IMG/VR virus record: IMGVR_UViG_3300025536_000010
Span: 62,001 to 126,000 of that record
DNA: 64,000 bases
Strand: one strand, 5' to 3'
Shown here: positions 1,001-19,715 of the stretch, in pieces
Position numbering within the stretch: the first letter of the stretch is position 1
How the letters are laid out: each line of letters begins with the position of its first letter
Made by a program: the position numbers and the translations under genes
Notes under the pieces: model-generated
What the model was told of the DNA's origin: nothing
The model's database searches: none
What the model saw: only the letters and a program-made list of their open reading frames with translations

Positions 1001-2221
1001 ATGCGCTGGGAAGAGATCCCGCTGGTCACGGATGACTGGGCCGTCAAAGTCGCTGCCCCGGCGTACGACATCCGTTGTGCCGTGGCCGGTGTCTACACGG
1101 CAGTTCCTATCGGTGTCTACTACCACCCGGGCCTGGAAAAAGCCGCGCTGTTCCCGCAAGGGACCGACGCTGCCGACCAGGCCCGGGTGCTCGCTGCGAC
1201 TGAGCGCGCGGTTGGACCCTCCGGGGTCCGACCGCTTTTTCTTACCTATCAGGAGGTGGGGGCTCCCGAAACCCAGTGGGTCAAGGTCGCCTACTCGCCC
1301 ACGCTGCGACGTCTCGGCGAGGCCACAAACTTCTTCCCCGGGCAGTACCCAGGCGGGCTGCCCAACCACCCGTCGCCGGTCGCGGCCATGCTGACGTCCG
1401 GCCTGGTCGGGGCGGGCCTCGGCTGGGGCGGCGGCAAGCTCCTCAACAAGTTGCTGCCCGAGCGCTTCGGGGACAACCTGGGGCGGACGGGCCTGATCCT
1501 CGGCGGCTTGCTGGGGGCTGCCCCCGGCGCCGCGTGGGGCGGTGTCAACACGCTGACCGGCAACCGCTTTAACGACTCCTCCCTCACGCAGGGCGACCCA
1601 CTCCAGGCAGACCTGCTGTTTCCGCGAGCGATGGACGGCTCCAACGCCGTACCGCCGGCGCAGGGGGCCGCGCCGCTTGAAGGGATCAAGGACTTCGTCA
1701 CCACGCAGCGCAGCGTGAACCCCAAGAAGCTGCTCAAATTCTCCGAGGATCTGGAGGCCGTACCGTTGGGCAAACGCTACCAGGCGGCCGTCGACCTGGT
1801 CAAAGAAGCCTTCGGGGACTCTTTCGGCGCGGAACCGGACGACCTGGGACCGACGCCGCTGGACGTCAACGTGAACAGCCTGGGGCAGACGCTTTGGCAG
1901 GCTGGAGCTACGCCGCGTCTGGCAGCCTCCACGATGGGCGCCATGTTCGCCGCTCAGCAGTTCCCCGACGCGCGGGCGCAGCCTGGTCTAGTGACGGCTC
2001 ACCAGATGGGGCAGCTGGCCCAGAGCATGGGGCAACCCTACCAGGAAGGCCCGAAGACAAACTACGGGCTCAACGCCGCCAAGGACTTCATCAAGGGCAC
2101 GGCGTTCGGGCTGGGCGCAAACGCCCTGGTCGGTACGCCGTACCGGGCCGGCACGTTTGGCCTGGCCAACGCTGGCCTTGGTGTCATAGGTGCTGTGGTG
2201 TCCAACTTCTTCGGAGGTTAG
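1001..2221 (+). CDS. Hypothetical virion/internal protein with glycine-zipper segments and K-x-A motifs
   Basis: 406-aa ORF; VKVA twice, VKEA; GLVGAGLGWGGG and GGLLGAAPG segments. Confidence 0.7.
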   Translation: MRWEEIPLVTDDWAVKVAAPAYDIRCAVAGVYTAVPIGVYYHPGLEKAALFPQGTDAADQARVLAATERAVGPSGVRPLFLTYQEVGAPETQWVKVAYSPTLRRLGEATNFFPGQYPGGLPNHPSPVAAMLTSGLVGAGLGWGGGKLLNKLLPERFGDNLGRTGLILGGLLGAAPGAAWGGVNTLTGNRFNDSSLTQGDPLQADLLFPRAMDGSNAVPPAQGAAPLEGIKDFVTTQRSVNPKKLLKFSEDLEAVPLGKRYQAAVDLVKEAFGDSFGAEPDDLGPTPLDVNVNSLGQTLWQAGATPRLAASTMGAMFAAQQFPDARAQPGLVTAHQMGQLAQSMGQPYQEGPKTNYGLNAAKDFIKGTAFGLGANALVGTPYRAGTFGLANAGLGVIGAVVSNFFGG

Positions 2222-2265
2222 AATACCGGAAGTTGAAGGGACTCTTTAACACGGAGGTTTTGCTC

Positions 2266-2709
2266 ATGGACGTAGCTACCGAGTTCAAGGCAGCCATCGA
2301 CGCCGTCATCGCCGACTACAAGGCGAAGGCCAAGGATGGGCTGACCATCCCCGAGATCTGGGAACTCTCCAGCAACGCACTCGCCACGTTCGTCAGCCTC
2401 GCCGGCAAGCTCAAGACCCTGAGCGGCGCCGACAAGAAGAAGCTGGTCATGGACGCGGCGGCCGACTTCTACGACAAGGTCATCGCGCCCATCGACATCC
2501 CCAGGGTGCCGAACTTCGTCGAGGTCACGGTGGTCGACCCCGCCGTGCGCCAGCTGTGGCTGATGCTCGCGGACGGGGCCGTCGAGGCCCTGGTCAACAT
2601 CTTCAACAAGTCCGATGGTTGGTTCAAGGAACCGGCCGACGACGGCACCTGGAAGCCGACCACGCCGACTGGCAATCCCGCGCTACCCCCAGGCTTCACA
2701 CCGTACTGA
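2266..2709 (+). CDS. Hypothetical protein
   Basis: ATG at 2266 preceded by CACGGAGG SD; typical codon usage. Confidence 0.75.
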   Translation: MDVATEFKAAIDAVIADYKAKAKDGLTIPEIWELSSNALATFVSLAGKLKTLSGADKKKLVMDAAADFYDKVIAPIDIPRVPNFVEVTVVDPAVRQLWLMLADGAVEALVNIFNKSDGWFKEPADDGTWKPTTPTGNPALPPGFTPY

Positions 2710-2810
2710 GAGGGACTCCGGGAGTCTGTGGCCTCCCGGGGAGCAACTGGCCCTGCCTGGATCGTTTCCGGGCAGGGCTTTCTCAAAACCGGCTTTTAGG
2801 AACGGACTCC

Positions 2811-3212
2811 ATGAACTACAACGGGATGACCTTCCTCGGCAACGGTTCCGTACTCAATCTGCAAGAAGATGTCGTCCGCTTCGGCCCGCTTCGCTTCTGG
2901 GCGGAACGTGGCCTGGTCCACGTTGAAGACGCGACCGACAACAGCTACGAAGTCATGTCAGTGCGGACCTTCCTCAGCCGCGCCCGCGGGCTGTCCGACA
3001 TGATCGGCAACTCGACCCAGCGCGAGATGCACAGCGAGGACCGCTATGACCAGATGGAGCGGACGCGCCACCTCACTTTCCTGGAAGGTGCGGCCAACCT
3101 CGCCCGCAAGGCCCAGATTCAGGGCATGCCCTCGGACCCCAGTGCCCGCCGCGAACTGGTGCGCCGGCGGCCCAAAAGCGTCGTCGTCCCCGCCTACGGC
3201 GGCGGCATGTAA
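2811..3212 (+). CDS. Hypothetical protein
   Basis: ATG 2811 (MNYNGMTF...), in frame with the listed 2556 ORF. Confidence 0.7.
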   Translation: MNYNGMTFLGNGSVLNLQEDVVRFGPLRFWAERGLVHVEDATDNSYEVMSVRTFLSRARGLSDMIGNSTQREMHSEDRYDQMERTRHLTFLEGAANLARKAQIQGMPSDPSARRELVRRRPKSVVVPAYGGGM

Positions 3213-3230
3213 CGAGACAAGGAGGCAGGG

Positions 3231-3644
3231 ATGCCACTTAACGCAAGGGAAGCATTCAAGGTTGGTTTCCTGGCCCGCTGCGTCGAGGACGGCTTGAGCC
3301 CCGACGAGATGCTGGACCGTGTCAAGTTCGCTGCTGAACTCCTGGAGAAGCGCGCCGGCATCATTAGCACGCTCGGCGGTAAACTGGCCGACGTCGGCCA
3401 GGGTATCGGCTCAGCGGCGCTCGGCTACGGCTTGCCGCTGGCCCTGGCGGCCCCACCCATTTTGGGCGGAGTCGCGGGCTACGGCTTAGCCAGAGCCACC
3501 GACATCGACGACACCGACATCGACGACGTCAAGGACCGCGAGGTCATGGACGAGTACGTCCGGCAGACAGCCAGGCTCAAACGGCAGCGGGCGGCGCGCG
3601 ACTACCAGAAGGCAAAGCAGCAGACAGGCCGGATCTTCATGTAA
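3231..3644 (+). CDS. Hypothetical K-x-A motif protein
   Basis: AAGGAGG SD; VKFA, EKRA followed by a Gly-rich hydrophobic segment. Confidence 0.75.
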   Translation: MPLNAREAFKVGFLARCVEDGLSPDEMLDRVKFAAELLEKRAGIISTLGGKLADVGQGIGSAALGYGLPLALAAPPILGGVAGYGLARATDIDDTDIDDVKDREVMDEYVRQTARLKRQRAARDYQKAKQQTGRIFM

Positions 3645-3659
3645 GCAGGGTGAACCCCT

Positions 3660-4094
3660 ATGCCTTCGAGCTTGGTGAAGTTCAGCAACCGGACACGGGC
3701 ATCGGGGGGTCGCCACCTCCACTGGAACCGGCTAGAGTTCGACGGCCTGCCGTTCCGCGGCGACATGGCCCCGATCATGCCGGAGGAGGAGTACGAGGCC
3801 CGAGCCGTTCGCATCTCCGATTTCCGCAACGGCTTTTTCGATGTCCAGGACGCTCAGGAGAACAAGTGGTACTGCGACGTGATGGAGTGCTGCTTCAACG
3901 GCTGGTTCAAACTGTGGTACGAAGAAAAGTTCTGGGTCGGGCCGGACGGCAAGCGCACCACGAAGCATTACCTGGAGTGGGTCGAATACTATATGGAGGA
4001 CGGCACGCGGACGCCGTTCGTCACCAGTGGCATGATGGAGATGGCGCATGGACAGCAAAACCTCCTCGGACATTATCAGCAGGGTCCGGGCTGA
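3660..4094 (+). CDS. Hypothetical protein
   Basis: 144-aa aromatic-rich globular ORF in the frame with typical codon bias. Confidence 0.7.
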   Translation: MPSSLVKFSNRTRASGGRHLHWNRLEFDGLPFRGDMAPIMPEEEYEARAVRISDFRNGFFDVQDAQENKWYCDVMECCFNGWFKLWYEEKFWVGPDGKRTTKHYLEWVEYYMEDGTRTPFVTSGMMEMAHGQQNLLGHYQQGPG

Positions 4095-4965
4095 GAAGCA
4101 GGCGTTTCTGGGTCTGGGCGAGGCACAGCCGGACACGGCTGGGTTCGCTGACGCGATCCAGGACATGGCCTCGGCGCAGCTCAAGGCCGACGCGGGCCGC
4201 GACGTGCGCAACCTGGCCCTAGCTGCCCTGGGTGTGGGCGTCGCCGGGCGCGGGGCCGTGGGCCTCGTCAACGCGCTCAAAGGCGACAAGCCGAAGAAGA
4301 CGCGCAGCGGCCCTACCATGCTGCCCTTGCCGTACCCGGTCGAGCCGGCGGTCATGCCCGGCAACATCAAGGCCGGCGGCTTCCTCAGCGGGGACGCCGC
4401 TTCCACGAAGTCCGGCATCCCCTGGTACACGCCGGCCATGTTCCTCGGCGGCCTGGGTGGGCTGGCGGCCGGCTGGAAAGGCATGGACGCACTGCTGGAC
4501 GCGCGTCGCAAGAAGGAGCGCGAGAACGAACTGATAACCGCCCGCCAGCAGTTCCACGACGCGCTGCTGTCGCAATACGACAAGCCCCTGGCACTCAAGA
4601 AGGCAGCCGAGGCGACGACGATGGAGAAGGTCGGCGCGCTTCTGGACAGCCTGTTCGACAAGTTCACCGGCACCCTGGAGAAAACCTCCATCGACTGGTC
4701 CAACCTGGGCGGGATGGCCACGGGCGGCTACGGGGCCTACGCCGGCCTCTCGGGCCTGCTTGCCGGCGCCCTGGTCTACGACAAGATCCAGAAGCGTTCG
4801 CAGCGTGCGGTCCTGGAGAAGGCCATGCAGCGCCGACAGCGGCGCGAGTTCATGCAGCGGCCGACCGAGATCTACGCGATCCCGGAGCCGGTGTCAGCCG
4901 TGCCCAAGGCCAACTTCAAGGACGAGATGAAGCTCCTGACGGAGTCTCCCGAAGCGGAGGTGTAA
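4048..4965 (+). CDS. Hypothetical K-x-A motif protein with glycine zippers
   Basis: EKQA, IKAG, KKAA, EKTS; three GxxxG hydrophobic segments. Confidence 0.75.
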   Translation: MDSKTSSDIISRVRAEKQAFLGLGEAQPDTAGFADAIQDMASAQLKADAGRDVRNLALAALGVGVAGRGAVGLVNALKGDKPKKTRSGPTMLPLPYPVEPAVMPGNIKAGGFLSGDAASTKSGIPWYTPAMFLGGLGGLAAGWKGMDALLDARRKKERENELITARQQFHDALLSQYDKPLALKKAAEATTMEKVGALLDSLFDKFTGTLEKTSIDWSNLGGMATGGYGAYAGLSGLLAGALVYDKIQKRSQRAVLEKAMQRRQRREFMQRPTEIYAIPEPVSAVPKANFKDEMKLLTESPEAEV

Positions 4966-4966
4966 G

Positions 4967-7900
4967 GTGGCTGGACTGCTGGCCGATTTCCCCAAGCCGA
5001 AAGCGCCAGCGCTGGACCTGCCCCAGACGAAGGCGCAGTCGATCTTGTCCAGCGGGCCGTTGACGGCCCCGCCTACCCCCGCGCCGCAAATGCGGGAGTT
5101 CGGCGATGCGCGCCTCACGCGCCAATACATCTACGAGGACGCCCTGAACGCCGCCCGCAACATCGAACCCATCGAAGACGAACGCTACCGCCTGCGGCTG
5201 GCCGACGTGGACTGGGCCGACCCGGAACGCTTCACGCGCAAGCAGCGCAAAGCGGCAATCCTGGCCGGCGACACGCTGGCTCGGCGCCTGCGCGGCAGCT
5301 GGGTATTGGAGGACGTTGCCACGGGTAAGGAGATCCAACGGCGCGCCCAGATCGTCGGCCGCATTCCTTACCTGTCCAGCATGGGCACGTTCGTCCACAA
5401 GGGGAACGAATACACCGTCAACCACCAGCAGCGATTGCGGCCCGGCGTCTTCGCCCGCGTCAAAGACAACGGCGAGATCGAGAGCCATGTCAACGTACTG
5501 CCGGGTAAGGGCGTCTCGCACCGCTACTTTCTGGACCCGGAGAAGGAACTGTTCAAGCTGCGGCTCGGACAGGCCGAGATGCCGCTGCTGCCGCTAGTCC
5601 AGGCCCTCGGCGCCACCGACAAGGAAGTCCGCGAGGCGTGGGGCGACCAGCTGTTCGCGGCCAACTACAAGCACCTGGACAGCGGCCAGACTATCAAGAA
5701 GCTGGCCGCGCGCCTGCTGCGCCGCGCCGACCAGGGTTTAGACGAAGGCACGACGCGGCAACGGCTGGCCGATACGATCAACCGTATGGAACTGGACCCG
5801 GAGGTCACCAAGCGCACGCTGGGCCAGCCGTACGCCAACCTAAACAAAGAAGTTATCCTCAACGCCACTAAAAAACTGATCCAGGTCAACCGCCGCGAAG
5901 TTGACCCCGACGACCGCGACAGCCTGGCCTACCAGCAATTCTTCGGCCCCGAAGACCTGTTCGCCGAGCGCCTGCGGCGGGACCACGGTAACCTGCGGAA
6001 ACAGCTGTTCAGGAAGATCGCCCTGGCCGGCAACCTGGACAAGATGCCCAGCGGCGCGCTGACGCCCCAGGTCGAGCAGGTGCTGCTCGGCAGCGGGCTC
6101 GCGCAGGCACTCGAAGAGATCAACCCGGCCGAAGTCTTCGATAAGCAGAGCCGTATCACGCGCATGGGCGAGGGCGGTATCCCAAGCCTAGACGCGATCC
6201 CCGACGAAGCCCGCGCCGTACAGCCGTCGCACATGGGTTTCATGGACCCGCTGCGGACACCGGAGAGCTTCCGCGTCGGCGTCGACCTGCACATGGCGCG
6301 CAGTTCGCGCAAAGGCCGCGACGGCCGCATCTACACGAGCCTCCGCGACCAGCAAGGGAACATGGTTTGGAAGTCCCCGCAGGACGTGGCTGAGGCAAGC
6401 ATCGCTACGCCGGACGTGCTCAAATGGGACACGAAGCGCGTGCCGGTGATGAAGGGAGGCAAGCTGGCCTATGTTCCGAAGAATGAAGTGGATTTTGTCC
6501 TACCTAACTTCGAGGACTCGTTTTCGCCGCTTGGTAACATGGTGCCGCTCAAGAGCATGGTCAAAGGCCAGCGCGTCGCAATGGCCAGTCGCATGCTCAC
6601 CCAGGCCCTCCCCCTCACCGCCGCCGAGGCTCCGCTTGTACAATCCGGCTTGCCTGGCAGTAAGGGCGCCCGGAGCTTCGAGGAAGAATACGGCAAGCAC
6701 ATGGGAGCAGTGGCGGCTGATTCGGACGGACGGGTCGTCGATGTCCGTGACGGAGTTATTAAGCTCAAGTACAACGACGGCCGCACCGACGAGGTCGAAC
6801 TCTACGAGAACCACCCGTTCAACCGGAAGACCTACATCAACCAGACCGCGGTAGTAAAACCAGGCGACGCGATTACGAAAGGACAGCTGCTGGCTCACAG
6901 CAACTACACCGACAAGACCGGGGCGACGGCGCTGGGCACAAACCTGAACGTCGCCTACTGGCCCTACCTGGGTTACAACTTCGAGGACGCGGTGGTGATC
7001 TCGGAGAGCGGGGCCAAGAAGATGTCCTCCGAGCACATGTACCAGCACGACTTGGAGGTCACGGACAAGCACAAGATCGGGAAGCGGCATTACGTCAACC
7101 TCTTCCCCGGTAAGTTCGACAAGAAGGCGTACGAGAACCTGGACGACGACGGCATTGTTCGGCCCGGCACCGTCGTCAACCACGGTGACCCGCTCATCCT
7201 GGCTGCGCGGCAGAAAGAGTTCGCGCAGAACAAGATCCACAAGAAAAAACAGGCAGGGTACGGCGATGAGTCTCTACTGTGGAAGCATCACGATCCTGGG
7301 GTTGTTACCGACGTCGTGTGGGGCAAAAACGGGCCTGTCGTCCTGGTTAAGTCCCAGTCTCAAATGCAAGTCGGCGACAAGCTCTCCGGCCGTTACGGCG
7401 ATAAAGGAGTGGTCGCGGCCATCGTCCCCGACAGCCAGATGCCGCACGGTCGGGACGGTAACCCCTTCGAGCTTCTCCTGAACCCGCTGGGCGTCATCAG
7501 CCGCACCAACCCGGCACAGAAAGTCGAGGCTCAGCTGGGCAAGATCGCGCGCTTGACCGGCAAGCCCGTCAAGGTGCCCGATTTCGAGGACGAGGAAGAC
7601 CTGACGGCCTGGGCACAAATGCAGCTGCGGATGCACGGCCTCAAGGACACCGAAGACATCGTCTGGCCCGAGAAAAACATGAAGGTGCCAGGCATCCACT
7701 CCGGTACGCGCTTCTTCATGAAGCTGCACCACACCGCCGAATCCAAAGGCCAGGGTCGCGGCGGTGGCTCCTATTCGATGGACGACACGCCGGCTAAAGG
7801 TGGCGCACAGGGTTGTTTCCTGGCCGGCACGCACCTGCATACGGCTGAGCACGGTTTTCAGGACATCGCCCGCATCGTCGGCCGGCGCATGCCTGTCAAA

Positions 7901-8113
7901 GTGCTGACTCGGCGGCCGGGCGGCGTACACCAGCAGTGGCTGCCGGTCACGGACTGGTTCCACTACCGGGTCGACGCAAACGCACTGGTGACGCTGCGGC
8001 TTGGTAACGGCCGGGAGATCCACGTCACCAGGAACCACGAGTTCGTCATGGCAGACGGCACGCGGAAACTGGCGGGCGACCTGGTCGCGGGCGACGACCT
8101 GATGGAGGTTTGA
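4967..8113 (+). CDS. rpoB: Phage RNA polymerase beta subunit (N-extein, 949 aa) fused to N-terminal split-intein half
   Basis: RpoB motifs GTFVHKGNEYTVNHQQRLRPGVF, HMGFMDPLRTPES, GYNFEDAVVIS, GDKLSGRYGDKGVV, LNPLGVISRTN, FMKLHH; ends in an intein-like CFLAGT...VTRNH. Confidence 0.93.
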   Translation: MAGLLADFPKPKAPALDLPQTKAQSILSSGPLTAPPTPAPQMREFGDARLTRQYIYEDALNAARNIEPIEDERYRLRLADVDWADPERFTRKQRKAAILAGDTLARRLRGSWVLEDVATGKEIQRRAQIVGRIPYLSSMGTFVHKGNEYTVNHQQRLRPGVFARVKDNGEIESHVNVLPGKGVSHRYFLDPEKELFKLRLGQAEMPLLPLVQALGATDKEVREAWGDQLFAANYKHLDSGQTIKKLAARLLRRADQGLDEGTTRQRLADTINRMELDPEVTKRTLGQPYANLNKEVILNATKKLIQVNRREVDPDDRDSLAYQQFFGPEDLFAERLRRDHGNLRKQLFRKIALAGNLDKMPSGALTPQVEQVLLGSGLAQALEEINPAEVFDKQSRITRMGEGGIPSLDAIPDEARAVQPSHMGFMDPLRTPESFRVGVDLHMARSSRKGRDGRIYTSLRDQQGNMVWKSPQDVAEASIATPDVLKWDTKRVPVMKGGKLAYVPKNEVDFVLPNFEDSFSPLGNMVPLKSMVKGQRVAMASRMLTQALPLTAAEAPLVQSGLPGSKGARSFEEEYGKHMGAVAADSDGRVVDVRDGVIKLKYNDGRTDEVELYENHPFNRKTYINQTAVVKPGDAITKGQLLAHSNYTDKTGATALGTNLNVAYWPYLGYNFEDAVVISESGAKKMSSEHMYQHDLEVTDKHKIGKRHYVNLFPGKFDKKAYENLDDDGIVRPGTVVNHGDPLILAARQKEFAQNKIHKKKQAGYGDESLLWKHHDPGVVTDVVWGKNGPVVLVKSQSQMQVGDKLSGRYGDKGVVAAIVPDSQMPHGRDGNPFELLLNPLGVISRTNPAQKVEAQLGKIARLTGKPVKVPDFEDEEDLTAWAQMQLRMHGLKDTEDIVWPEKNMKVPGIHSGTRFFMKLHHTAESKGQGRGGGSYSMDDTPAKGGAQGCFLAGTHLHTAEHGFQDIARIVGRRMPVKVLTRRPGGVHQQWLPVTDWFHYRVDANALVTLRLGNGREIHVTRNHEFVMADGTRKLAGDLVAGDDLMEV
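7814..8110 (+). other. Split intein N-half (IntN, 99 aa)
   Basis: Block A Cys1 (CFLAGT), block B TxxH (VTRNH), ends LAGDLVAGDDL then stop; no C-terminal Asn. Confidence 0.9.
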
Positions 8114-8116
8114 GTC

Positions 8117-10030
8117 ATGGAAGACCTTGGAGTCTTGGCGGCGAAAGCCGCTACGCTGCGCGTGAAACTGGCAAACGTGGCGGCCTTGGCGGCTTCGCCG
8201 GCCGGCGAGAGCGCACTCGCGCGCCTGGGCGGTTGGCTGTCCGGCAAAGCATTCAAGCCGGTATCGCAGATGGCTCGTCCGCAGTTCGGCACGCTTAACG
8301 CGCTTGGTGAAGAAGCGCAGGCGCTGGCGCGCCAGCAGCGCATGAGCCGGCTGACTCTAGGCTTATCCGACAAGCCGTACTTCCATGTTCAAGATCGTGT
8401 TGGTGGCGGCTTAGCCGGTGCCTGGCTCGGTGCGTACGCAGACAGTAAAGTGAACGGCGAGGTCAACGACCTCTCCAGTGCCGGGCGCCGTGCGGCAGCG
8501 GTGCTCGGCGGCGGTTATCTGGGCGGTAAAGGCGCGAACTCGGCTTTGAACGTCGGCCGCAAGTTTACAGCGAACACGTCGCCGCTCATGGGTTACGACA
8601 CGGCTTTGATTCCGAAAGTGTCGCTCAAGTCTATCTGGAACCACGGCGTCATGGACCGCCCAATGGGCGGCATCGCGCGCGGCGGTAGCGGCAGTGAGGC
8701 TAACCCGCGCTACGAACTGCTGCGGCGCTATCTCGGCATTCACAAGAACGACGCGGCCAAAGACATGTTCATCTCGAACGCGGACAAGTCGCTGTCGTTC
8801 AACCCGGCAGTCGTAAAGCCTGGCTCGAAAACATGGCAGCAGTACATTGACCCAGGGCGGCAAGACAGCAGCCTGGGTGTCCGATTCAGCGAGGGCCTCA
8901 AGAACCCACCCAAGCTCGAAGTACCCAATAGCGCCCCGCCCAAGCTCGAAGTATCCGGCAACGCCCCGGCCAAGAGTCTCATTCTTCCGGGCGCTAACCC
9001 GGAACCGCCGCGCAGCGTTTTGCTGGGCGGTGGCCAGCCGACAGGGCCGGCTAAAAAGCTGATCCTGCCGGGACAGGAACCAAACGCACCTGCACCGGCG
9101 CTGGTCATGCCCGGTCAAGGTCAAGCGCCCAGACCTGCGCCGAAGCCAGCGGCCCCGGAGAAAACGTACAGCCTCAACGAGGGCGACCTGGCTAACCCAC
9201 CTGGGTACAGCGTCGACCAGAAGAACAACCCGTTCAACAATCTGTTCGGCTCGCACGACATGCGCCACGTCCAGGGCTCTGTTGAGCGCTTGCCGGGCGG
9301 CAAGTTCCGCACCTCGCACGAGCTAGGTGACACCTGGAACTTCCGTCTCGACCCGCACGAGACGCCAGAAGCCGCTGCTTACCTCAAAGGCATGGCTGGC
9401 ACGTCGCCTAACCGCTGGGGCGAGTTCCTCAAGCAGAAGGCGGACATCGGACACGCCAGTGCCTACGGCGGCCCGGATAAAACAGTGAGCGACCGGCTCA
9501 AGAACTACGGCATGCGCAGTGTCATCGAAGCGGCAGCACAGAAAGAAGCTCCGGTCATTCGGCAACGTATGCGCTTCACTTACGAGGCACCTACCGAAGC
9601 CAACGCGGCTTTCGCCAAGGCGACTGGCGGAGTAGCGCCGAGCGAGATCGAGTTGTTGTCGTCCAACGTCGCCGGGCCTGCCGTGCTTAGCCCCGAACGT
9701 CAGCAAATGCTGCGGCGGCTGCTTGGCGGCAGTGCAGTCGCGGGCACCGGCGGCCTTTACGCGAGCGGCCAGCTACCGAGCAAAGACACGCCCCAGGCTG
9801 CAACGCCACAGCCGCAGCCGCTAACGCCAAAACAAGAGGCACCTGCGTCGAAGACGTGGCGACCACGGGGACGAGAAGCACTATCGGCTTTCTTCCGCAA
9901 GCCGAAGTCTGAGCTATCTACTCGGCAGAAAATGATCCGCGGTGTCACCGACCGCGCGGCCGGCGGCATCCGCAGCTTCTGGGACCGTATGCAGCAGCGT
10001 TATGGCGGCAGTGGAGGGCTCGGAGCGTGA
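8117..10030 (+). CDS. Hypothetical 637-aa protein between the split-intein halves
   Basis: GGAGG SD; stop overlaps the next start (GTGA); N-terminal AKAA/VKLA, Gly zippers, Pro-rich repeats; no LAGLIDADG, HNH or GIY-YIG motif seen. Confidence 0.8.
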   Translation: MEDLGVLAAKAATLRVKLANVAALAASPAGESALARLGGWLSGKAFKPVSQMARPQFGTLNALGEEAQALARQQRMSRLTLGLSDKPYFHVQDRVGGGLAGAWLGAYADSKVNGEVNDLSSAGRRAAAVLGGGYLGGKGANSALNVGRKFTANTSPLMGYDTALIPKVSLKSIWNHGVMDRPMGGIARGGSGSEANPRYELLRRYLGIHKNDAAKDMFISNADKSLSFNPAVVKPGSKTWQQYIDPGRQDSSLGVRFSEGLKNPPKLEVPNSAPPKLEVSGNAPAKSLILPGANPEPPRSVLLGGGQPTGPAKKLILPGQEPNAPAPALVMPGQGQAPRPAPKPAAPEKTYSLNEGDLANPPGYSVDQKNNPFNNLFGSHDMRHVQGSVERLPGGKFRTSHELGDTWNFRLDPHETPEAAAYLKGMAGTSPNRWGEFLKQKADIGHASAYGGPDKTVSDRLKNYGMRSVIEAAAQKEAPVIRQRMRFTYEAPTEANAAFAKATGGVAPSEIELLSSNVAGPAVLSPERQQMLRRLLGGSAVAGTGGLYASGQLPSKDTPQAATPQPQPLTPKQEAPASKTWRPRGREALSAFFRKPKSELSTRQKMIRGVTDRAAGGIRSFWDRMQQRYGGSGGLGA

Positions 10031-10149
10031 AAATAACTTCGGTAGAACCGTTCGCCGGCACTGCGGATCTGGAGGGGAAGGTGGACGTCTACGACATTAC
10101 CGTCGCGGACCTCCACCTTTACGGCGTCTACGGAGTGCTGGTGTCCAAC
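10027..10149 (+). other. Split intein C-half (IntC, 41 aa)
   Basis: MKITS...VYDITV..LH.Y...GVLVSN followed by +1 Ser (10150); same architecture as cyanobacterial DnaE IntC (MIKI...VYDIGV..DHNF....ASN). Confidence 0.9.
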
Positions 10150-11787
10150 AGCAAGCGCGTGGCCATGCTGGACACCAACGCCCTGCTGTCGCACGGGGCC
10201 ACGGAAACGCTGCGTGACGTCCGCCTGATTCGCGGCCAGGGCCGAGCCAGTGAGAACTACTGGCTCCAGTTCATGATGGGTTACACGCCGGTCGACCCCA
10301 AGGTGCCGCAGACGCACGAGAAGTTCGTCAACCAGCTGAAAGCCTCTGGCATCAACGTGGTCCGCGACGGCTACCAGATGAACGTCATGGCCCTGACCAA
10401 CCGGGACGTGGACACCCTGGCGTCCGACCGCATCATCAAGAGCGGGGACACCGTGCGCTTCGACAAGGAACTCAAACCGATCCCGGGTGGCCTGTTCGAT
10501 CCCACGCTCACCGGCGGACACAACGGTAAGCGCTGGGCGGCTATCGAACTGCCCGAACCGATGCCCAACCCGGTCATGGAGGAGCCGATCCGGCGCATGC
10601 TGAACCTGACCCAGAAACAGTTCAGCGCCGTCCTGGCGGGCGAGCACGAACTGCCTAGCTTCGGCAGCGGCCCCAAAGCGATCACCCAGGCCCTGGAGAA
10701 CATCAACCTGGAACGCGAGTTGGCCAAAGCCAAGGCCGAATACACCCACGGACGCGGTACAGCCCGCGACGCTGCGCACCGGCGCTGGCAGTATCTCGAC
10801 GGCGCCCAGAAGCGCGGTCTGCATCCCAAAGATTGGATACTGAACCGCGTGCCAGTGCTGCCGCCGGCCTTCCGCCCGGTCAGCGTCATGGGGGACTCCG
10901 GCGTACCCCTGGTGTCGGACCCCAACTACCTCTACAAGGAGTTGCTCGACGCCAACAAGAATTTCACGGACATGGTCAAGCAGGTGGGGGACAAGAACGT
11001 CGGCAACGAGCGGCTGGCGGTCTACAACTCGTTCAAGGCGGTTACCGGCCTGGGCGAGCCTGTTCACCCCAAGCTGATCGAGAAAAACGTGAAAGGCATT
11101 CTCAAATCCGTTTTTGGAACCTCGCCGAAGTTCGGCACGGTGCAGCGGAAACTGCTGTCCTCGACCGTCGACAACGTGGGCCGCTCGGTCATTACGCCGA
11201 ACCCTGACTACGATATGGACACCATCGGCGTGCCCGAGAACCAGGCGTTCGACGTCTACTCGAAGTTCATCGTCCGCCGCCTGCGCCGCCGGGGCCTACC
11301 GATCCGCGAGGCTCTCAAGCACGTCCGCGACAAATCGGGCCTGGCCCGGGACGTTCTCCAGGAAGAGATGGACAACCGGCCGGTCTATGTCAACCGGGCT
11401 CCGGTGCTGCACAAATTCGGTATCATGGCCTTCCGCCCGCGGTTGATTAAGGGGGACGTCCTCCAGGTCAGCCCGTTGATCGTCAAAGGCTTCAACGCTG
11501 ACTTTGACGGGGACGCCATGCAGTTTCACGTCCCGTCGTCCGATGAAGCGGTCAAGGAAGCCTACGAGCGGATGCTGCCCAGTCGCTCGCTGCTTAGCCC
11601 GGCCGATTTCAAAAGCCCGGTCCACGCTCCTGGCCAGGAGTACCTGGGCGGGCTCTACTACGCGACGCGCCAGCGTGAGGAAGACAAGCAGCGGCGGCCC
11701 CGCGTGTTCCGTTCCGTAGCCGACGCCAAGAAGGCGCACCAGCGCGGCGAGATCACAGCGGACACGCCGATTCAGATCATGGAGTAA
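10027..11787 (+). CDS. rpoC: C-terminal split-intein half + RNAP beta C-terminus + catalytic N-half of beta'
   Basis: After the IntC: SKRVAMLDTNALLSHGA...QLKASGINV (beta end), then GGLFDP, VPVLPPAFRP, NRAPVLH, FNADFDGDAM (11494-11514), GLYYAT. Confidence 0.93.
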   Translation: MKITSVEPFAGTADLEGKVDVYDITVADLHLYGVYGVLVSNSKRVAMLDTNALLSHGATETLRDVRLIRGQGRASENYWLQFMMGYTPVDPKVPQTHEKFVNQLKASGINVVRDGYQMNVMALTNRDVDTLASDRIIKSGDTVRFDKELKPIPGGLFDPTLTGGHNGKRWAAIELPEPMPNPVMEEPIRRMLNLTQKQFSAVLAGEHELPSFGSGPKAITQALENINLERELAKAKAEYTHGRGTARDAAHRRWQYLDGAQKRGLHPKDWILNRVPVLPPAFRPVSVMGDSGVPLVSDPNYLYKELLDANKNFTDMVKQVGDKNVGNERLAVYNSFKAVTGLGEPVHPKLIEKNVKGILKSVFGTSPKFGTVQRKLLSSTVDNVGRSVITPNPDYDMDTIGVPENQAFDVYSKFIVRRLRRRGLPIREALKHVRDKSGLARDVLQEEMDNRPVYVNRAPVLHKFGIMAFRPRLIKGDVLQVSPLIVKGFNADFDGDAMQFHVPSSDEAVKEAYERMLPSRSLLSPADFKSPVHAPGQEYLGGLYYATRQREEDKQRRPRVFRSVADAKKAHQRGEITADTPIQIME

Positions 11788-11795
11788 CACCTGCC

Positions 11796-11825
11796 TTGTC
11801 CGGCCACGCCGGAGTAGGCTACACT
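11796..11825 (+). promoter_or_regulatory. Possible sigma70-type promoter
   Basis: TTGTCC-N18-TACACT in the intergenic gap before 11867. Confidence 0.3.
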
Positions 11826-11866
11826 ATACCCGCAGTACGGATACCAACAAGGAAAGGGAGTTCCGC

Positions 11867-12604
11867 ATGAGCACCCCTTCGCACGGCGATCACCTGGTCA
11901 ATCTCGAAGTCATCAGGATGGCACGTCAACAGCTTGGCGGCTTCCAGAAACAAGCCTTCATCCCAGCTAGCGACCCCGGCATGGGAGCCGGCGGTGGCGG
12001 CGGTGGTGGCGGGGGCGGCGCTCCTCCAATGGACCCCGCGATGATGGGCGGCGGCGGGGGCGGCGCTCCTCCGCCCGATCCTGCCGCTGGCGGCGGTGGC
12101 GGTGGCGGCGGTGGTGGGCTCGATCCCATCATGCAAATGATGACGCAGATGCAGCAGCAGATCCAGCAGCTGACCCAGGGCGGCGGCGCGGGCGGCGGCG
12201 CGGGCGGCGCGCTGAAACCCAAAATCGACGTCAACGTCGAGATGATGCAGATCAAGAACATGCTCGCCAAGATCTGCGACCACCTCGGCATTCAGATCCC
12301 GGCCCAGGACATGGTCGCCACGCCTGAGAAGCTCATGGCGATGTCCCAGGGGCAGTCGGCGGCTTCGCCTCCTGGCACGGGGGCCGGCGGCGCAGGGGCT
12401 GGCGGTGCGGGTGCCGGGGCCATCCCGCCGATGGACCCGATGCAGGGCATGCAGCCCGCCGGCTCGCCTGGCGGCGAGAAGATGGGGGCGCACCGTCCCT
12501 ACAGAGCCAACGGGCAAGCCTACGACGGAACTGCTCTGGCGTCGGGCCTGGGCGAAACGCACAATCGGGCCGCGGCAATCATGCGGCTGCGTCAGGCGGC
12601 ATAA
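11867..12604 (+). CDS. Gly/Met/Pro-rich low-complexity protein (K-x-A motif)
   Basis: QKQAF near N-terminus; poly-Gly runs with MDP/APP motifs. Confidence 0.75.
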   Translation: MSTPSHGDHLVNLEVIRMARQQLGGFQKQAFIPASDPGMGAGGGGGGGGGGAPPMDPAMMGGGGGGAPPPDPAAGGGGGGGGGGLDPIMQMMTQMQQQIQQLTQGGGAGGGAGGALKPKIDVNVEMMQIKNMLAKICDHLGIQIPAQDMVATPEKLMAMSQGQSAASPPGTGAGGAGAGGAGAGAIPPMDPMQGMQPAGSPGGEKMGAHRPYRANGQAYDGTALASGLGETHNRAAAIMRLRQAA

Positions 12605-12607
12605 CTC

Positions 12608-12934
12608 ATGGCTATGATCGTCGAGATTATCCCGGAAGGCGGTATCGGTCGGCGGGATGCCTTGGTTGTCCCGGCGTCCCAGATCATCATCCGCCAAGAC
12701 GACGGCACTCCGCTCATGGTCGCCGCCGTTTACGGCCCCGAGGGCGCCATCGCCTGCGGGTCAGTCAGCCACGATGAAGAGGAGTTCAACCGCTTCCTGC
12801 GGATGCTCAACATTCACCAAACCGTCATGGTGCAACGGATCAAGATGCCACCACCGCCGCCCGGGGCCAGGCTCGTCGCCGGCCCTAAGAGCCCTAGCCT
12901 CACGCACAAAAAGGAGATCATCCTTGGCAAGTGA
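12608..12934 (+). CDS. Hypothetical protein
   Basis: 108-aa ORF abutting both neighbours. Confidence 0.65.
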   Translation: MAMIVEIIPEGGIGRRDALVVPASQIIIRQDDGTPLMVAAVYGPEGAIACGSVSHDEEEFNRFLRMLNIHQTVMVQRIKMPPPPPGARLVAGPKSPSLTHKKEIILGK

Positions 12935-14132
12935 ACTTCCTGGCGGCCAACGCCGCCGACGCCCGGCCGTCGACCGCACGCGCGTCCGTACAGCCGATGA
13001 GTATTACAAGAGCGGCGACGTGTCCGCCGTCCAGGGCGGCAACACCGCGGCCGACAGCACGCTCAAGCCGGGCCAGGCGCCGGTGCCTGCGGCCGCGCGG
13101 CGGAAACCGGCGTCCGACCGCAGCCGCGTCCGTTCGGCCGACGAGTATTACAAGGCACAGGACCAGGCCCCGACTGCCGAACAGATCAGGGCCGGGCAGG
13201 TCCGTGACCCTCGCCGTCTTGGCCCACCACCGCAGCTGGGCGCGCCGCAGGCGCTGCCGGCCAAGCAGCCACGGTTGCCCAAGCCGGGGCGCCAACGGCC
13301 CGAACTGCTCATCACCCAGGCGGACGAGATCAACGGCGTCATGCAGGAAGTCGTCAGCCGCCTAAGCATGGGCGAGCAGCGCGTGATCGTCTACGTCGCC
13401 AAGGGGCAGGTGCCCCTGCTGCGGCGCGCCAGAACCAATCTGGAACTGCTGGTGACCCGCGAGGTCATCACCGAGGACCAGGCGCGTGACGTGACCTTCT
13501 CCTACGAGCAAGGCGAGGAGGCCAAAAAGGCCATCGACGCCAAGCTAGGAGCCGCGCCGACTTTCGAGAGCCAGCCCACAGTCAGTGTCGACGCCAAAAA
13601 GGCGGCTGACACGGAGATCGACCCGCTGGCCTTCCTCAACGGTGAGGGCGACGACCCGGACGACCCGAAGATCGACGTCTCGCCAGTTGCCGAGCAGGAT
13701 CAGGTCGAGGTCGACACGTCGAACGATCCAGACGCCAAACCGGACGTCGATGACGACGACGGCGCGGACAATACTTTCCTCAACCCGGAGAACAAGGAAG
13801 CCGCGGCGTTCTCGATTCCGTTCAACAAGCTGCCCGAGAATCTGATAATCGACCCGAACAAGCCGGGCGTCATGGGCGTTGACCCGGCCGCGCCGGAAGG
13901 CGACCGCACCGTGGTCGAGGTTCAGCAGCCCGAAGAGACGGTCGTGCAGGTCACCTCGGGCAACCTGCAACCCATGCAGCAGATGGAAGGCGCCGGCGAC
14001 AAGGGCGAAGACGTGCCGAACCTGGGCAGCCACATCGAGGCCCCAACCGAGGCGATGGAGGGTGTCGGCGACGCCCCCAAGCCGCAGCAGCAATACCGTC
14101 GCGGCGGTCGACGCTCCGGTCGCGGCTCGTAA
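12924..14132 (+). CDS. Hypothetical acidic protein with duplicated DRxRVRxADEYYK motif
   Basis: TTG start 12924 after AAGGAG SD, in frame with the listed 12657 ORF. Confidence 0.7.
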   Translation: MASELPGGQRRRRPAVDRTRVRTADEYYKSGDVSAVQGGNTAADSTLKPGQAPVPAAARRKPASDRSRVRSADEYYKAQDQAPTAEQIRAGQVRDPRRLGPPPQLGAPQALPAKQPRLPKPGRQRPELLITQADEINGVMQEVVSRLSMGEQRVIVYVAKGQVPLLRRARTNLELLVTREVITEDQARDVTFSYEQGEEAKKAIDAKLGAAPTFESQPTVSVDAKKAADTEIDPLAFLNGEGDDPDDPKIDVSPVAEQDQVEVDTSNDPDAKPDVDDDDGADNTFLNPENKEAAAFSIPFNKLPENLIIDPNKPGVMGVDPAAPEGDRTVVEVQQPEETVVQVTSGNLQPMQQMEGAGDKGEDVPNLGSHIEAPTEAMEGVGDAPKPQQQYRRGGRRSGRGS

Positions 14133-14216
14133 GAGTCCTCCTTTCGGCGGGCGTGGGTTACAAAGGATTGTGGCCCACGTCCGTTTTCTAAAAGCCAGTT
14201 TTGAGGGAGGGAGCCC

Positions 14217-14627
14217 GTGTTCGATACCATCCGCTCTTGGTGGCGAGGCGTCCCCAAACACGAAGTCAAAGAGGTCGAGTGGGGGCGACGGATCGCCAAG
14301 GCGCTCACGACCTACGGCCTGGCCACCCGCGACGAGGTCCGCATCTTCGACGGCACGCGCATCGACCTGCTTACGCCACACCATGCCGTCGAGATCGACT
14401 GGGCGCCGAAGTGGGCTGAGGCCATCGGACAGTCGCTCTACTACGGCGTCCGGTCCAAAAAGCAGGCCGTTGTCCTCCTGCTGCTGTGCGACTCCCGCGA
14501 CGAGGCGTATATCGTCCGCTGCCGCGCGGTCTGCACTACGAATACGCCCAAGATTCCGATTTGGCTGCTCAACACCAAGAGCCGTGTTTTGTACCTCGCG
14601 GACGGACAGACGATCACGGTGGAGTAA
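14217..14627 (+). CDS. PD-(D/E)xK-like nuclease
   Basis: E...DGTRIDLLT...AVEID...KWAEAIGQSLYY, a restriction-endonuclease-fold pattern. Confidence 0.6.
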   Translation: MFDTIRSWWRGVPKHEVKEVEWGRRIAKALTTYGLATRDEVRIFDGTRIDLLTPHHAVEIDWAPKWAEAIGQSLYYGVRSKKQAVVLLLLCDSRDEAYIVRCRAVCTTNTPKIPIWLLNTKSRVLYLADGQTITVE

Positions 14628-17600
14628 TGCTCAAAACCACGATGGGGCAGCTGCTTGTCAATGACTCGCTGCCCGAAGACCTGCGCGATTACGGGCGCAT
14701 CCTCGACAAAAAGGGGATGGCGACCTTGCTGCGCACCGTGGCCGAGAAATACCCGGACCAGTACCGCGACGTCTCGAAGAAGCTGGCCGACATCGGCCGC
14801 AACGTCGCCAGCGAGTTTGGTGGCAACAGTTTCGGGCTGGCGCACATGGCCAAGTCCGGCCTGGGGCAGCAGTACCAGAAGAACTTGCAGGCGAAGCTCA
14901 AGCAGATCCTTGACGATGACAACCTGGACGACGCTAAGCGGCAGGAGTTGATCGTCAAAGCGGCGGGCATGGACCGCGAGAAGCAGATGAAGTCGATCCT
15001 GGAAGAGGCCATCAAAAACAAGAACCCGCTGGCCTCCCAGGTGATCTCCGGTTCGCGCGGCAACGAGATGAACCTGGCCTCGCTGCTGGACTCCGACCGG
15101 CTGTACTCCGACCACCGGGATCAGCCGCTGGCCATCCCTATCGTCCACAGCTACAGCCAGGGCCTGCGGCCCATCGAATACTGGGCTGGCACCTACGGCG
15201 CCCGCAAGGGCGTCATGGCGACCAAGTTTGCCACCCAGGACGCCGGCTTTTTGAGCAAGCAGTTAAACCAGGTCGCCCACCGTCTGATGGTGGTGGACGA
15301 GGACGACCCGCGCTACGAAGGCGACCCGACACCGCGCGGCTTGCCGGTAGACACAGACGACCCCGACAACGAAGGGGCGCTGCTGGGCATGGACGTTGGC
15401 CCGTACAAGCGGAACACCGCGCTGACTCCCAAAATTCTCAAGGACTTGAAAAGGAGGGGACATGCTCGCCTTCTTGTCCGAAGCCCGGTGGTGGGCGGCA
15501 GTCCTGATGGTGGTATTTACGCACGGGATGTTGGTGTGCGTGAACGTGGCACTCTTCCTGGTCGCGGTGAGCAGGTTGGACTCACCGCTGCCCAGGCGCT
15601 GTCGGAGCCGCTGTCGCAGGGGCAGCTGTCGGCTAAGCATTCGGGCGGCGTCGCGGGGCAGGAGAAAGCGGTCGGCGGCTTCCAGTACATCAACCAGCTG
15701 ATTCAGGTGCCCAAGGTGTTCAAAGGCGGGGCGGCGCACTCAAACGAGGACGGCAGCGTCGAACGGATCGAGGAAGGTCCGGCCGGTGGCCAGTTCGTCT
15801 GGATCAACGGCAAGCGGCACTACGTCGGCGAGGGTTTTGAGTTGAAGGTGAAACCTGGCGACCAGGTCGAGGCTGGTGACCTGATCTCGGAAGGTCTGCC
15901 CAACCTGAACGTCGTTGTGGACCATAAGGGACGTGGCGAGGGCGCACGCTATTTCGTCAACTCGTTCGTGGACGCGATGCGCGGGGCCGGGCTCAAGGTC
16001 AACCGGCGCAACGTGGAAGTGCTGGCTCGGGGGCTTATCAACCATGTCCGACTCACCGACGAGTTCCAGGGCAACCTGCCCGACGACGTTGTCCCCTACA
16101 GCACCCTTGAGCACCTCTACGAACCACGCGAGGGTCACCAGACTCTACGAACTGAGCGCGCTTTGGGACAATACCTTGAGCGCCCAGTTCTACACTACAG
16201 CATCGGCACGAAGGTCCGCCCTTCGGTCCTTAAAGAGCTTCAACAGTTTGGTATTAAGGAAGTTGCTGTTCACGCAGAGCCGCCTCCGTTCAAGTCCGAG
16301 ATGATCCGTGGTATGTACTCCCTCCAGCACGACCCGGATTGGATGACCCGCATGTACGGCTCCGGCCAGAAGTCGAGCCTGCTGGAGGCGGTTCACCGTG
16401 GCCGCAGTTCCAACGAACTCGGCACCAGTTTCGTGCCCGGTCTGGCTCGCGCCGAAGAGTTCGGGCGCGTGGGCCAGGTACGCCAGCCGCTACCCGGCAC
16501 GAAGCCGCCGCTCATCGAGCCCGTCACGGAGGACGAGGAGATGCCCAAGAAGAAGCCAACGACGCCGCCGACTTCGCCGATCGCGCTGAACCTCCAGCCG
16601 CCCAAGACCCCCGCACCCAAGAGCATGTTCGGCGGCATGGGGTCCATTTTCAAGCTCTCCTGTGACGCCCTAGAACAGCGGCGGGAGGCCGAGATCCTGC
16701 TGGAGAAAGCTGCTAAGCGGATCGAACAGGTTCGCCAGGCCACAGCCAAGACCAAGCAGACGCAGCAGGTGAAAGCCAGCGCACCTTTGCAGCCTGTTCG
16801 ACGCGCGCAGCAGATCAAGACGGCCGAAACGAACATCGGCAGCAGCACCGTCACGGCTGGTGGCACGACGATCAAGCCGAGCAGTCAGGGCAGCGCAGCA
16901 CCGAAACCGCCCACACCGGCAGCACCGCCAGGCGGGGACGCCTGGAGCGGTCCGCGCGGACCCGCCAACCCGACTTTCGGCGTCGGCCGCAATCCGCACG
17001 CGCTGGGCCAGGGTGGCTACAACCCGGGCATGCCGTCCGGCATCGTCAACGACCCGGAAGCGTTCTCCCGCTTCGTTGACAGCAGCCAACGATTCGGCGG
17101 GTTGACCGGCGGGGCTGTTGCTTTCGGCTCTGGCCTCGACCAGAACGCCGTGGCCACGCTGACCAACCAGAGTCCCTACGTCAAAGGGCACTACGGCTAC
17201 AGCGAGTTCGACCGGCCCACGCCGCCAGGTTACCACCCCGGCATCGGGCGCCCCGGCATGCGCGGCGGCCAACCTGGCAGGTACGGAGGCCACCCCGGTA
17301 TGCAGGACGCTGACGGCATGGACTTCGACGGTGGCTACCCCGGTTTTGACCCCTGGCAGGATCAAGGCGGGCAGCAGCAGACTCAACAGCAGGCGCCACC
17401 GCAGCCCGGTTTCGGCGCGGGCGACATGCTCCAGATGGCTCCCGGCATAACGTCTATGGGCTCCACTGGCGCGCAGCTGGGCGGGCTAGCCACACGCGGG
17501 CTGGGAGCCGCAGCGAACGCCACAGGGGCCACGCGCGTCGGCGGCGCGCTGGGACGCACTGGCGGGGCGTTGGGCCGGGCCGGCGGCTTGGTCGGCAAAG

Positions 17601-18658: not shown

Positions 18659-18666
18659 GCCTAGCC

Positions 18667-18696
18667 TAGCCTCAGCCCGAACCTGGATTGTATAAT
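18667..18696 (+). promoter_or_regulatory. Possible promoter (perfect TATAAT inside an imperfect palindrome)
   Basis: TATAAT at 18691-18696 in intergenic DNA within GGATTGTATAATCC; weak -35. Confidence 0.35.
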
Positions 18697-18725
18697 CCGG
18701 TTATGTCTTGCAAGGAGTGCAAAGT

Positions 18726-19715
18726 ATGAACAAGGAAGTTATTGCCCAGATCGGGCTCGCGGCCGGGCTTCTCCACAAGAACGCCGGGTTCGATCTGCGT
18801 TCGATGGCAAACCTGTTCGGCCGTGGGGCCAAGGCGGTCGGCCACCAGGCCACCGGCCTGAGCCGCACGGTGACGCCGCAAATCTCGCAGGTCGGCAACC
18901 GCACGGTCGGCACGCTCAAGCCGGGCTGGGGCTTCAACGCCGCCAAGCCCATCCAGACGGCCGCAGGTGTGGGCGCTGCCGGCGTCGGCGGGGCGATGGC
19001 GCACCAGAACCTCTCCGAAAGGGCCTTCTACGAGGGCAAGAGCGGCTTCAACCCCTACACCTGGGGCCAGGACGCTCCCAGCCACGAAGAGTTGTTCCAG
19101 CGCAACCAGAACCGTTTCAACGAGATGGCCCAGCCGCTGGTCGACCAGCAGGAAGCCGCGCGCGGCAAGAACGACATGGGCGAGTACAATCGCCTCCAGG
19201 AGCAACTCGAACGCGGCAACTTCGGTGGCACCTTCCGTTTCGGCTTCGGCCAGAGCAACGCCAGCCGTTTCATGGGCAACGCCCAGGGCGCGCAGAAAGC
19301 TCGCCAGGGCGAGTACAACAAGGAGATGGCCGCAGTCGGCCCCCAGGCCGGCGACGACCAACTGCTCCAGTCGTTGCGGCAGCGACTGTCTTCCGGTAAC
19401 CTGCTGCCGGTGCAGGCCGCGAGCCTCCAGAAGCAAATGGAACACGTCCAGAAGCGGATGTCGCAGACGCCGGGCACCGAGACGGCCGCCGCCACGGCCA
19501 TCGCCCAGAAGATGCGCGGCGCGGGTATGCGGCACACGCCCTACGAAGTACCAGGTGGTAGTCCGTCGCCGTTCCCGATGCCGGCCGCTGGGCATTGGCA
19601 GCTGGGCGGGCGGCCGATGAACCCAGGCTTCGTGCAAGGTTGGAACCTGAACCCGAACGACCACCGGCAGTCCCCCGACATCAACAGCGTCTGGGAGAAT
19701 GTCCTGGCGCGCTAA
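18726..19715 (+). CDS. Hypothetical Gly/Gln-rich virion-type protein
   Basis: AAGGAG SD; LHKNAG near the N-terminus. Confidence 0.72.
   Translation: MNKEVIAQIGLAAGLLHKNAGFDLRSMANLFGRGAKAVGHQATGLSRTVTPQISQVGNRTVGTLKPGWGFNAAKPIQTAAGVGAAGVGGAMAHQNLSERAFYEGKSGFNPYTWGQDAPSHEELFQRNQNRFNEMAQPLVDQQEAARGKNDMGEYNRLQEQLERGNFGGTFRFGFGQSNASRFMGNAQGAQKARQGEYNKEMAAVGPQAGDDQLLQSLRQRLSSGNLLPVQAASLQKQMEHVQKRMSQTPGTETAAATAIAQKMRGAGMRHTPYEVPGGSPSPFPMPAAGHWQLGGRPMNPGFVQGWNLNPNDHRQSPDINSVWENVLAR

Follow-up and report, generated by a model that had tools for sequence, protein, structure and literature searches.

Naturally split inteins are known from DnaE, the alpha subunit of DNA polymerase III, where the two halves are encoded at distant genomic positions (Dassa et al.). 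They are also known from the 'fractured genes' of phages, in which an enzyme gene is broken by a split intein, the halves are adjacent on one strand and an open reading frame (ORF) lies between them. The fractured enzymes listed by Dassa et al. 2009 comprise the gp41 helicase (gp41-1 to gp41-9), NrdA, NrdJ, IMPDH, DnaE, DNA ligase, terminase and one unknown, with no RNA polymerase among them; the eight types of enzyme in that list serve DNA synthesis and repair. Contiguous inteins have been described in the eukaryotic and viral second-largest RNA polymerase subunits RPB2/RPA2/RPC2/RPO (Goodwin et al. 2006). Here, we analyzed a 64 kb stretch (hereafter the window; 60–67% G+C) of the viral record IMGVR_UViG_3300025536_000010 (234,886 bp), which encodes the multisubunit RNA polymerase of a large environmental phage, with a beta gene broken by a canonically split intein. 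Our results indicate that the two precursors are very probably co-expressed and joined by class-1 protein trans-splicing, judging from the sequence and its conservation among relatives. Although this type of element is already known, its occurrence in a multisubunit RNA polymerase appears to be new, since no report of one was found in the literature that could be searched (subscription journals were mostly uncovered, and such an absence is not proof).

The genes of the polymerase region are all encoded on the + strand. ORF1 (4967–8113; GTG start, 1048 aa) consists of an RpoB-like N-terminal part of 949 aa that ends in TPAKGGAQG (N-extein, 4967–7813, delimited by Pfam, NCBIfam and alignment with an intein-less relative) and a 99-aa N-intein (IntN, 7814–8113). 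IntN begins with Cys1 at 7814 (CFLAGTHLHT), includes the block B motif TRNH (within VTRNHEF) and ends in DDLMEV; the stop codon, TGA, occupies 8111–8113. ORF3 (10027–11787; GTG start, 586 aa) opens with a 41-aa C-intein (IntC, 10027–10149) that carries a block F of the form VYDITV..H.Y and ends in VLVSN; the next residues are SKRVAMLDTNALLSHGA, with Ser+1 at 10150, where the C-extein of 545 aa begins (10150–11787). A preliminary description of the window had read ORF1 as ending in an N-intein with this Cys1 and TRNH block before a stop, and a downstream ORF as opening with a C-intein ending in VLVSN and followed by Ser, and both statements were confirmed. It also placed the halves 1.9 kb apart; this spacing is correct, but the gap is filled by a 637-aa ORF that had been overlooked (ORF2, or mid-ORF, 8117–10030, recognized by family alignment and hidden Markov models (HMMs)).

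Removal of the two intein pieces restores the host protein in frame, as it is found in dozens of intein-less relatives. The clearest comparison is with locus L002 (49% identity), where a single 1483-aa ORF reads ...TPAKGGEEG followed directly by SKRVSLMDVNALLSHGA. Residues 35–950 of ORF1 aligned with residues 27–945 of the L002 protein (BLASTP) and residues 42–586 of ORF3 with residues 945–1480, which places the two exteins exactly side by side at G944/S945 (here and below, a slash in a sequence marks the insertion point), with neither gap nor overlap. The exteins therefore do join into a conserved RpoB segment, as had been proposed. The IntC leader was missing at this site in 75 of 80 IMG/VR loci, most of which are contiguous ORFs of ~1460–1500 aa, and the intein-less junctions, where printed, follow the pattern ...PAKGGxxG/SKR[VI]..LD.NALLSHGA. 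Over its last 200 aa, the N-extein can be aligned with bacterial beta as far as ...QQPLGG, with AR9 chain 7s00_C among the matches. This places the insertion site where Pfam Rpb2_6 ends, with the counterpart of the Gln in the conserved GGQRFGEME segment as the next residue. No polymerase was matched in the PDB when the first 157 aa of the C-extein were used as a sequence query. A scan of genome contigs returned only intein-less copies, in metagenome-assembled genome bins of inconsistent taxonomy, and for this reason no host was inferred.

The identity of the interrupted protein is well defined by domain content. The N-extein matches Pfam RNA_pol_Rpb2_6 (4.3e-53) and Rpb2_3 as well as the NCBIfam rpoB models (1e-81), and the C-extein matches Pfam Rpb1_2 (2.2e-26) and Rpb1_1, NCBIfam rpoC (6.8e-66) and beta/beta' fusion models. 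Both ORF1 and ORF3 match the NCBIfam fusion models PRK09603 and PRK14844. The catalytic loop NADFDGD is present in ORF3, and a separate 1390-aa gene at 14486–18658 carries the beta' C-part (Pfam RNA_pol_Rpb1_5, 1.4e-16; PHROG RNA polymerase beta subunit), so that Rpb2 and Rpb1 domains, the catalytic loop and Rpb1_5 together mark a multisubunit RNA polymerase. Because ORF3 runs on into the N-terminal half of beta', the predicted spliced product (1494 aa, 166.5 kDa) is a beta/beta'-N fusion with the beta' C-part encoded separately. ORF3 thus holds more than the C-terminal end of beta, a point that qualifies the preliminary description. The gene at 14486–18658, whose position in the gene order is the same in L002–L005, is presumed to encode the partner subunit of the spliced product.

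Non-standard partitions of beta and beta' are likewise seen in the split subunits of phiKZ/AR9 and in the RpoBC fusion of Helicobacter/Wolbachia. The pieces in those systems are not joined by protein splicing, whereas the break in beta described here bears intein halves. The beta/beta'-N fusion predicted for the window is shared with gp206 of phage Arash.

Several lines of evidence identify the pieces at this junction as a class-1 intein. The NCBIfam model intein_Cterm (TIGR01443) exceeded its cutoff of 15.6 with IntC (21.8 bits), and intein_Nterm (TIGR01445) matched IntN with an E-value of 1.2e-4. All of the PDB sequence matches of IntN (16/16) were inteins, with Npu DnaE as the best (E 0.0026). 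In a Foldseek comparison, the AlphaFold model of IntN, which was built on 12 homologues and reached a predicted local distance difference test (pLDDT) of 85, matched the N-fragment of Npu DnaE (4qfq_A, 101 aa) from end to end at 26% identity (template modelling (TM) scores 0.86/0.84, root-mean-square deviation 1.8 A, E 1.5e-6). The top ~45 matches of the model were inteins or intein-like HINT domains. These comparisons support a predicted HINT fold for the N-half, with the split point as in Npu DnaE. The lack of a Hint match or fold had been put forward in the preliminary description as grounds for giving up the intein reading, and it was not upheld.

Conservation is concentrated at the residues expected to matter for splicing. 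C1, F2, T72 and H75 were invariant in 12/12 IntN sequences (31–51% identical to the window IntN), and the block B signature Thr-x-x-His corresponds to Thr72/His75, i.e., TRNH in the window. The terminal Asn, Ser+1 and the block F Asp (V[YFH]D or AYD) were each present in 80/80 IntC leaders. Together, the 99 and 41 aa of the two pieces amount to the size of a complete mini-intein; the fragments of the Npu DnaE split intein measure 102 and 36 aa. The ratio of non-synonymous to synonymous substitutions (dN/dS) was 0.2–0.3 in the exteins and higher in the intein pieces (0.3–1.0 on few codons), although most pairs were saturated and the shortness of the intein pieces made their estimates noisy. The high values for whole intein pieces indicate that constraint is concentrated on few sites.

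The split arrangement is widespread among relatives. Among the best 120 clusters of ORF3 homologues (90% identity), 80 carry an IntC leader of 37–46 aa ending in Asn-Ser-Lys-Arg/Lys, and the remaining ones are fragments of contiguous genes. The IntC-bearing clusters were drawn from JGI, ENA, NCBI and Logan assemblies, and both intein halves could be read in 11 distinct loci, where they sit on separate ORFs as in the window (TGA at 8111–8113, GTG start at 10027). A word-indexed search with the IntN region returned only six proteins, every one ending at IntN, though such a search is blind to contiguous alleles. One contiguous allele was found by a metagenome scan in L135 (JACCDR011114946.1), where one beta/beta'-N ORF of 2907 aa (2017–10737) accommodates four contiguous inteins. 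Three of them follow GEGGIP, LRTPE and KLHHTSE, and the fourth occupies the site of the split intein (370 aa, GGATG/C...VSN/SKR) and has Hint and LAGLIDADG_2 (6.7e-14) matches. Its identity is 34% to IntN (E 1e-15) and 38% to IntC, where its C-terminus matches (E 3e-6), a likeness that, with TIGR01443, also delimits IntC in the window.

The LAGLIDADG domain of this fourth intein begins where IntN ends and finishes where IntC begins, which identifies the split site as the canonical endonuclease-insertion loop. The most likely origin of the split form is a contiguous intein with a LAGLIDADG domain that occupied this site, such as the one that persists in L135. In a FastTree phylogeny of 228 C-extein sequences (92 labelled with and 131 without intein), the intein label changed 8 times, compared with 71 in shuffles, and most carriers fell within one supported set of 103 rows. 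Few changes and clustered carriers point to mainly vertical inheritance with some gains and losses. The proposal of a naturally split intein in the preliminary description is supported by the exact insertion, the L135 allele, the HINT model, the invariant residues and the recurrence of the architecture; its suggestion that relatives might hold an unsplit intein or none is borne out by L135 on the one hand and by L002 and many others on the other.

Other inteins were encountered in the same group of genes, and the beta/beta' genes of the clade have inteins at no fewer than eight, i.e., at least 8, insertion sites. In L003 (2915–7969; also L007 and L008), the gene that bears IntN is extended to 1684 aa by an additional contiguous intein (KLHHTAE/C...SGN/SKGQGRG). 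The proteins P0008, P0063, P0072 and P0117 have an intein of 314–370 aa in the beta'-N part (SPKFG/C...SGN/(T/S)VQRKL), P0095 has a 163-aa mini-intein after SHGA (SHGA/C), and P0085 has an intein after NPLGVISR (NPLGVISR/C). A contiguous intein ending in ..YWS[QL]N/SGRYG occurs in L074 (4078–10638; also L012 and L013) and in L023 (4983–10623). Five residues past this intein, two different phages lose the reading frame at an identical position: L074 has an in-frame stop there, and L023 a change of frame. In the distant isolate L166 (Vibrio phage D181, OZ196140.1, 144071–149585), a free-standing gene annotated as a homing endonuclease breaks up an rpoB-like gene, and the latter is uninterrupted in a relative, phage D69.

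The element resembles the Npu/Ssp DnaE inteins in its class-1 Cys1, in the same canonical split point and in its fragments of about 100 and 36–41 aa, and Npu DnaE is both the best structural match (4qfq_A) and the best PDB sequence match of IntN. The +1 residue of the DnaE split intein is Cys, and here it is Ser; the gp41-1 intein uses a Cys1/Ser+1 pair, as here. The host protein differs, being DNA polymerase III alpha in the case of DnaE, and unlike the DnaE halves, those in the window lie only 1.9 kb apart on one strand, a distance that falls to 31 nt in relatives. In the layout of the locus, the closest likeness is to the phage fractured genes, down to an allele without an intervening gene (gp41-7 in Dassa et al. 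2009; L003 here). The difference lies in the intervening gene itself: fractured genes in the sense of Dassa et al. 2009 have a free-standing homing endonuclease there, and the one found here belongs to a family without a detectable nuclease feature. The RPB2-type inteins (Goodwin et al. 2006) also differ, since they are contiguous, are found in eukaryotes and the viruses of eukaryotes, and in most cases have a LAGLIDADG domain.

The three ORFs stand head to tail. The TGA of ORF1 is followed by GTC and then by the ATG of ORF2, which in the window shares the frame of ORF1, and the stop codon of ORF2 overlaps the GTG start of ORF3 (GTGA). Within the 3' end of ORF2, a GGAGGG (10013–10018, + strand) can be read 8 nt upstream of this GTG and is a putative Shine-Dalgarno-like ribosome-binding site for ORF3. 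No terminator-like site was found on the + strand within 4967–18683. We infer that ORF1, ORF2 and ORF3 are co-transcribed and that their translation is coupled; abutting or overlapping stop and start codons and the lack of a terminator-like site would favour simultaneous, near-equimolar synthesis of the products. This argues against the timing or assembly switch envisaged in the preliminary description, for which we found no support. An interruption of the beta gene at the RNA level was also considered and was rejected because a scan of 4000–19000 for Rfam families, including group I/II introns, was empty.

In the mechanism that we propose, IntN and IntC, borne by precursors of 116.6 and 65.5 kDa, would meet and form the HINT fold, and Cys1 would begin an N-S acyl shift. 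Ser+1 would then take over the N-extein and the terminal Asn would cyclise, releasing the beta/beta'-N polypeptide of 1494 aa (about 166.5 kDa) together with free IntN (11 kDa) and IntC (4 kDa). The ligated polypeptide would associate with the separate beta' C-part to give the assembled polymerase. This polymerase is probably packaged in the virion, a reading prompted by its likeness, at only 30% identity, to gp206 of Salmonella phage Arash. Arash gp206 is a beta/beta'-N fusion adjoining the portal gene and had the highest spectrum count of any protein in purified virions.

With regard to ORF2, our comparisons indicated that the mid-ORF is a conserved companion gene that is unneeded for completing the HINT fold. 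The interval between the intein halves ranges from 31 nt without an ORF (L003/L007/L008) to ORFs of 81–637 aa, and a mid-ORF is present in 10 of the 11 distinct split loci, with conserved termini. The mid-ORFs begin at or over the IntN stop and finish over the IntC start. Their shared core of ~80–100 aa comprises a helix, a Gly-rich segment and a basic tail around a hypervariable middle; the helix is N-terminal (..LAAKAAALR.K..), and the C-terminus has a conserved motif (..FW.RM..RY.GG). Among 33,001 ORFs of the collected loci, HMMs of either end matched only ORFs between intein halves, and a database search with the mid-ORF profile returned nine proteins, of which at least five are on contigs sized like the IntC-bearing ones.

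ORF2 of the window combines this family core (C-terminal ..FWDRMQQRYGG..) with two inserted globular domains (residues ~20–245 and ~357–496) that are missing from most family members. ORF2 matched no family in Pfam, PHROG or NCBIfam, and Foldseek searches of PDB and BFVD with its AlphaFold model, in which both domains were confident, returned no structure at E<=0.001. A recognisable homing endonuclease was considered for ORF2 and is unsupported, given the lack of a nuclease family in these databases and of a fold match. The ORF2 domains recur in ~30 other metagenomic protein clusters, including long Gln/Pro-rich proteins, and are fused to LigD phosphoesterase and ATP-dependent ligase in P0134 and P0145. 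It is conceivable, if rather doubtful, that the mid-ORF evolved together with the split intein as a functional third partner that chaperones or gates trans-splicing, or ties the polymerase to virion packaging. If true, the locus would be a three-gene splicing module and no relic of endonuclease loss.

A number of observations weigh against trans-splicing. The TIGR01445 score of IntN is slightly under the curated cutoff (23.0 vs 24.5 bits), so that the HMM check suggested earlier was passed by IntC and just failed by IntN; the Pfam Intein_splicing match is weak (E 0.01), and IntC together with 10 extein residues found no sequence match in the PDB. The penultimate intein residue is Ser instead of His, as it likewise is in Npu DnaE. 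In the least saturated pair (L093/L094, dS ~0.4), dN/dS was ~1.0 for IntN and 0.75 for IntC compared with 0.29 for the exteins, values that for IntN and IntC rest on about 100 and 40 codons, respectively. Polymerases of the phiKZ/AR9 type function as non-covalent split beta/beta' pieces, so that activity need not a priori depend on a covalent join. Ligation itself was deduced solely from conservation. These points need to be considered together with the improbable alternative that the intein halves are dead, serving as a high-affinity dimerisation pair or being inert, with the polymerase a non-covalent assembly of the two precursors. The overall IntN dN/dS of ~1 in one pair and the unligated split RNA polymerase subunits of other jumbo phages would fit such halves. 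However, the residues needed only for the chemistry (Cys1, the block B Thr/His, the terminal Asn and Ser+1) are invariant in all homologues examined, and a retained 140-aa domain in the conserved beta segment GG..G followed by (Q/S)(R/K)R would probably upset folding.

Trans-splicing could also be conditional, with the mid-ORF product or the redox state of Cys1 controlling the joining as an assembly or packaging switch. This variant is compatible with class-1 trans-splicing and appears unlikely: the mid-ORF family is confined to the intervals between intein halves, occurs with its conserved termini in nearly all split loci and is translationally coupled to both halves, but L003/L007/L008 retain the split intein with a 31 nt gap and no ORF, which makes the mid-ORF dispensable. 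Its middle is hypervariable (81–637 aa) without any known domain or fold found, and coupled expression speaks against temporal separation. We consider it very improbable that ORF2 encodes an unrecognised type of homing endonuclease and that the locus is a standard, still mobile fractured gene. ORF2 does sit where fractured genes hold their free-standing endonuclease gene, and the tree requires 5–8 intein gains or losses. Nonetheless, no nuclease family or fold was detected for ORF2, the core shared among mid-ORFs is small, and the large domains of ORF2 occur in unrelated proteins. Misassembly within a contiguous intein (which the preliminary description had located at 8114–10026 as a possible refutation), a pseudogene, or read-through with frameshifting could be suspected from ORF1 and ORF2 lying in one frame in the window, separated by TGA-GTC-ATG. 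Such artefact or decay is effectively refuted by the comparative data. The same architecture recurs in many independent assemblies, which argues against misassembly, and the exteins are under purifying selection. At all other loci, the mid-ORF is out of the IntN frame and the IntN stops are TGA or TAG, a variation by which read-through or frameshifting to a contiguous intein was rejected; ORF3 is in a third arrangement (the GTGA overlap).

Other features of the window and its relatives were noted alongside. An ORF rich in Gly and Pro (11867–12604 in the window; 15002–15646 in L002), with stretches of poly-Gly and repeats of the PPMDP type, keeps its position between the beta/beta'-N and beta'-C genes. 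Glycine-zipper-like hydrophobic segments occur in ORFs flanking the polymerase genes (3231–3644 and 4048–4965 in the window; 6898–7998 and 14061–14957 in L002) and in some members of the mid-ORF family; the flanking ORFs were assigned to no family. Further downstream, repeats of the collagen triple helix (Pfam Collagen, 1.5e-61) are found in a 1306-aa ORF (33977–37897). Of the other large ORFs tested in 14486–64000, almost all were without a Pfam or PHROG family, among them ORFs of 894, 975, 917 and 2024 aa at 19699, 44140, 47760 and 52415, respectively.

If trans-splicing holds true, this would be, according to the searchable literature, the first case of a multisubunit RNA polymerase in which the catalytic core polypeptide requires protein trans-splicing, and natural split inteins would be extended from enzymes of DNA replication and repair to transcription. 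The about 80 diverged orthologous IntN/IntC pairs (Cys1/Ser+1), together with the contiguous LAGLIDADG relative, constitute a natural library that is useful for orthogonal split-intein tools and for studying the transition from contiguous to split inteins. With its many intein insertion sites, the clade is also a good system for the population dynamics of phage inteins.

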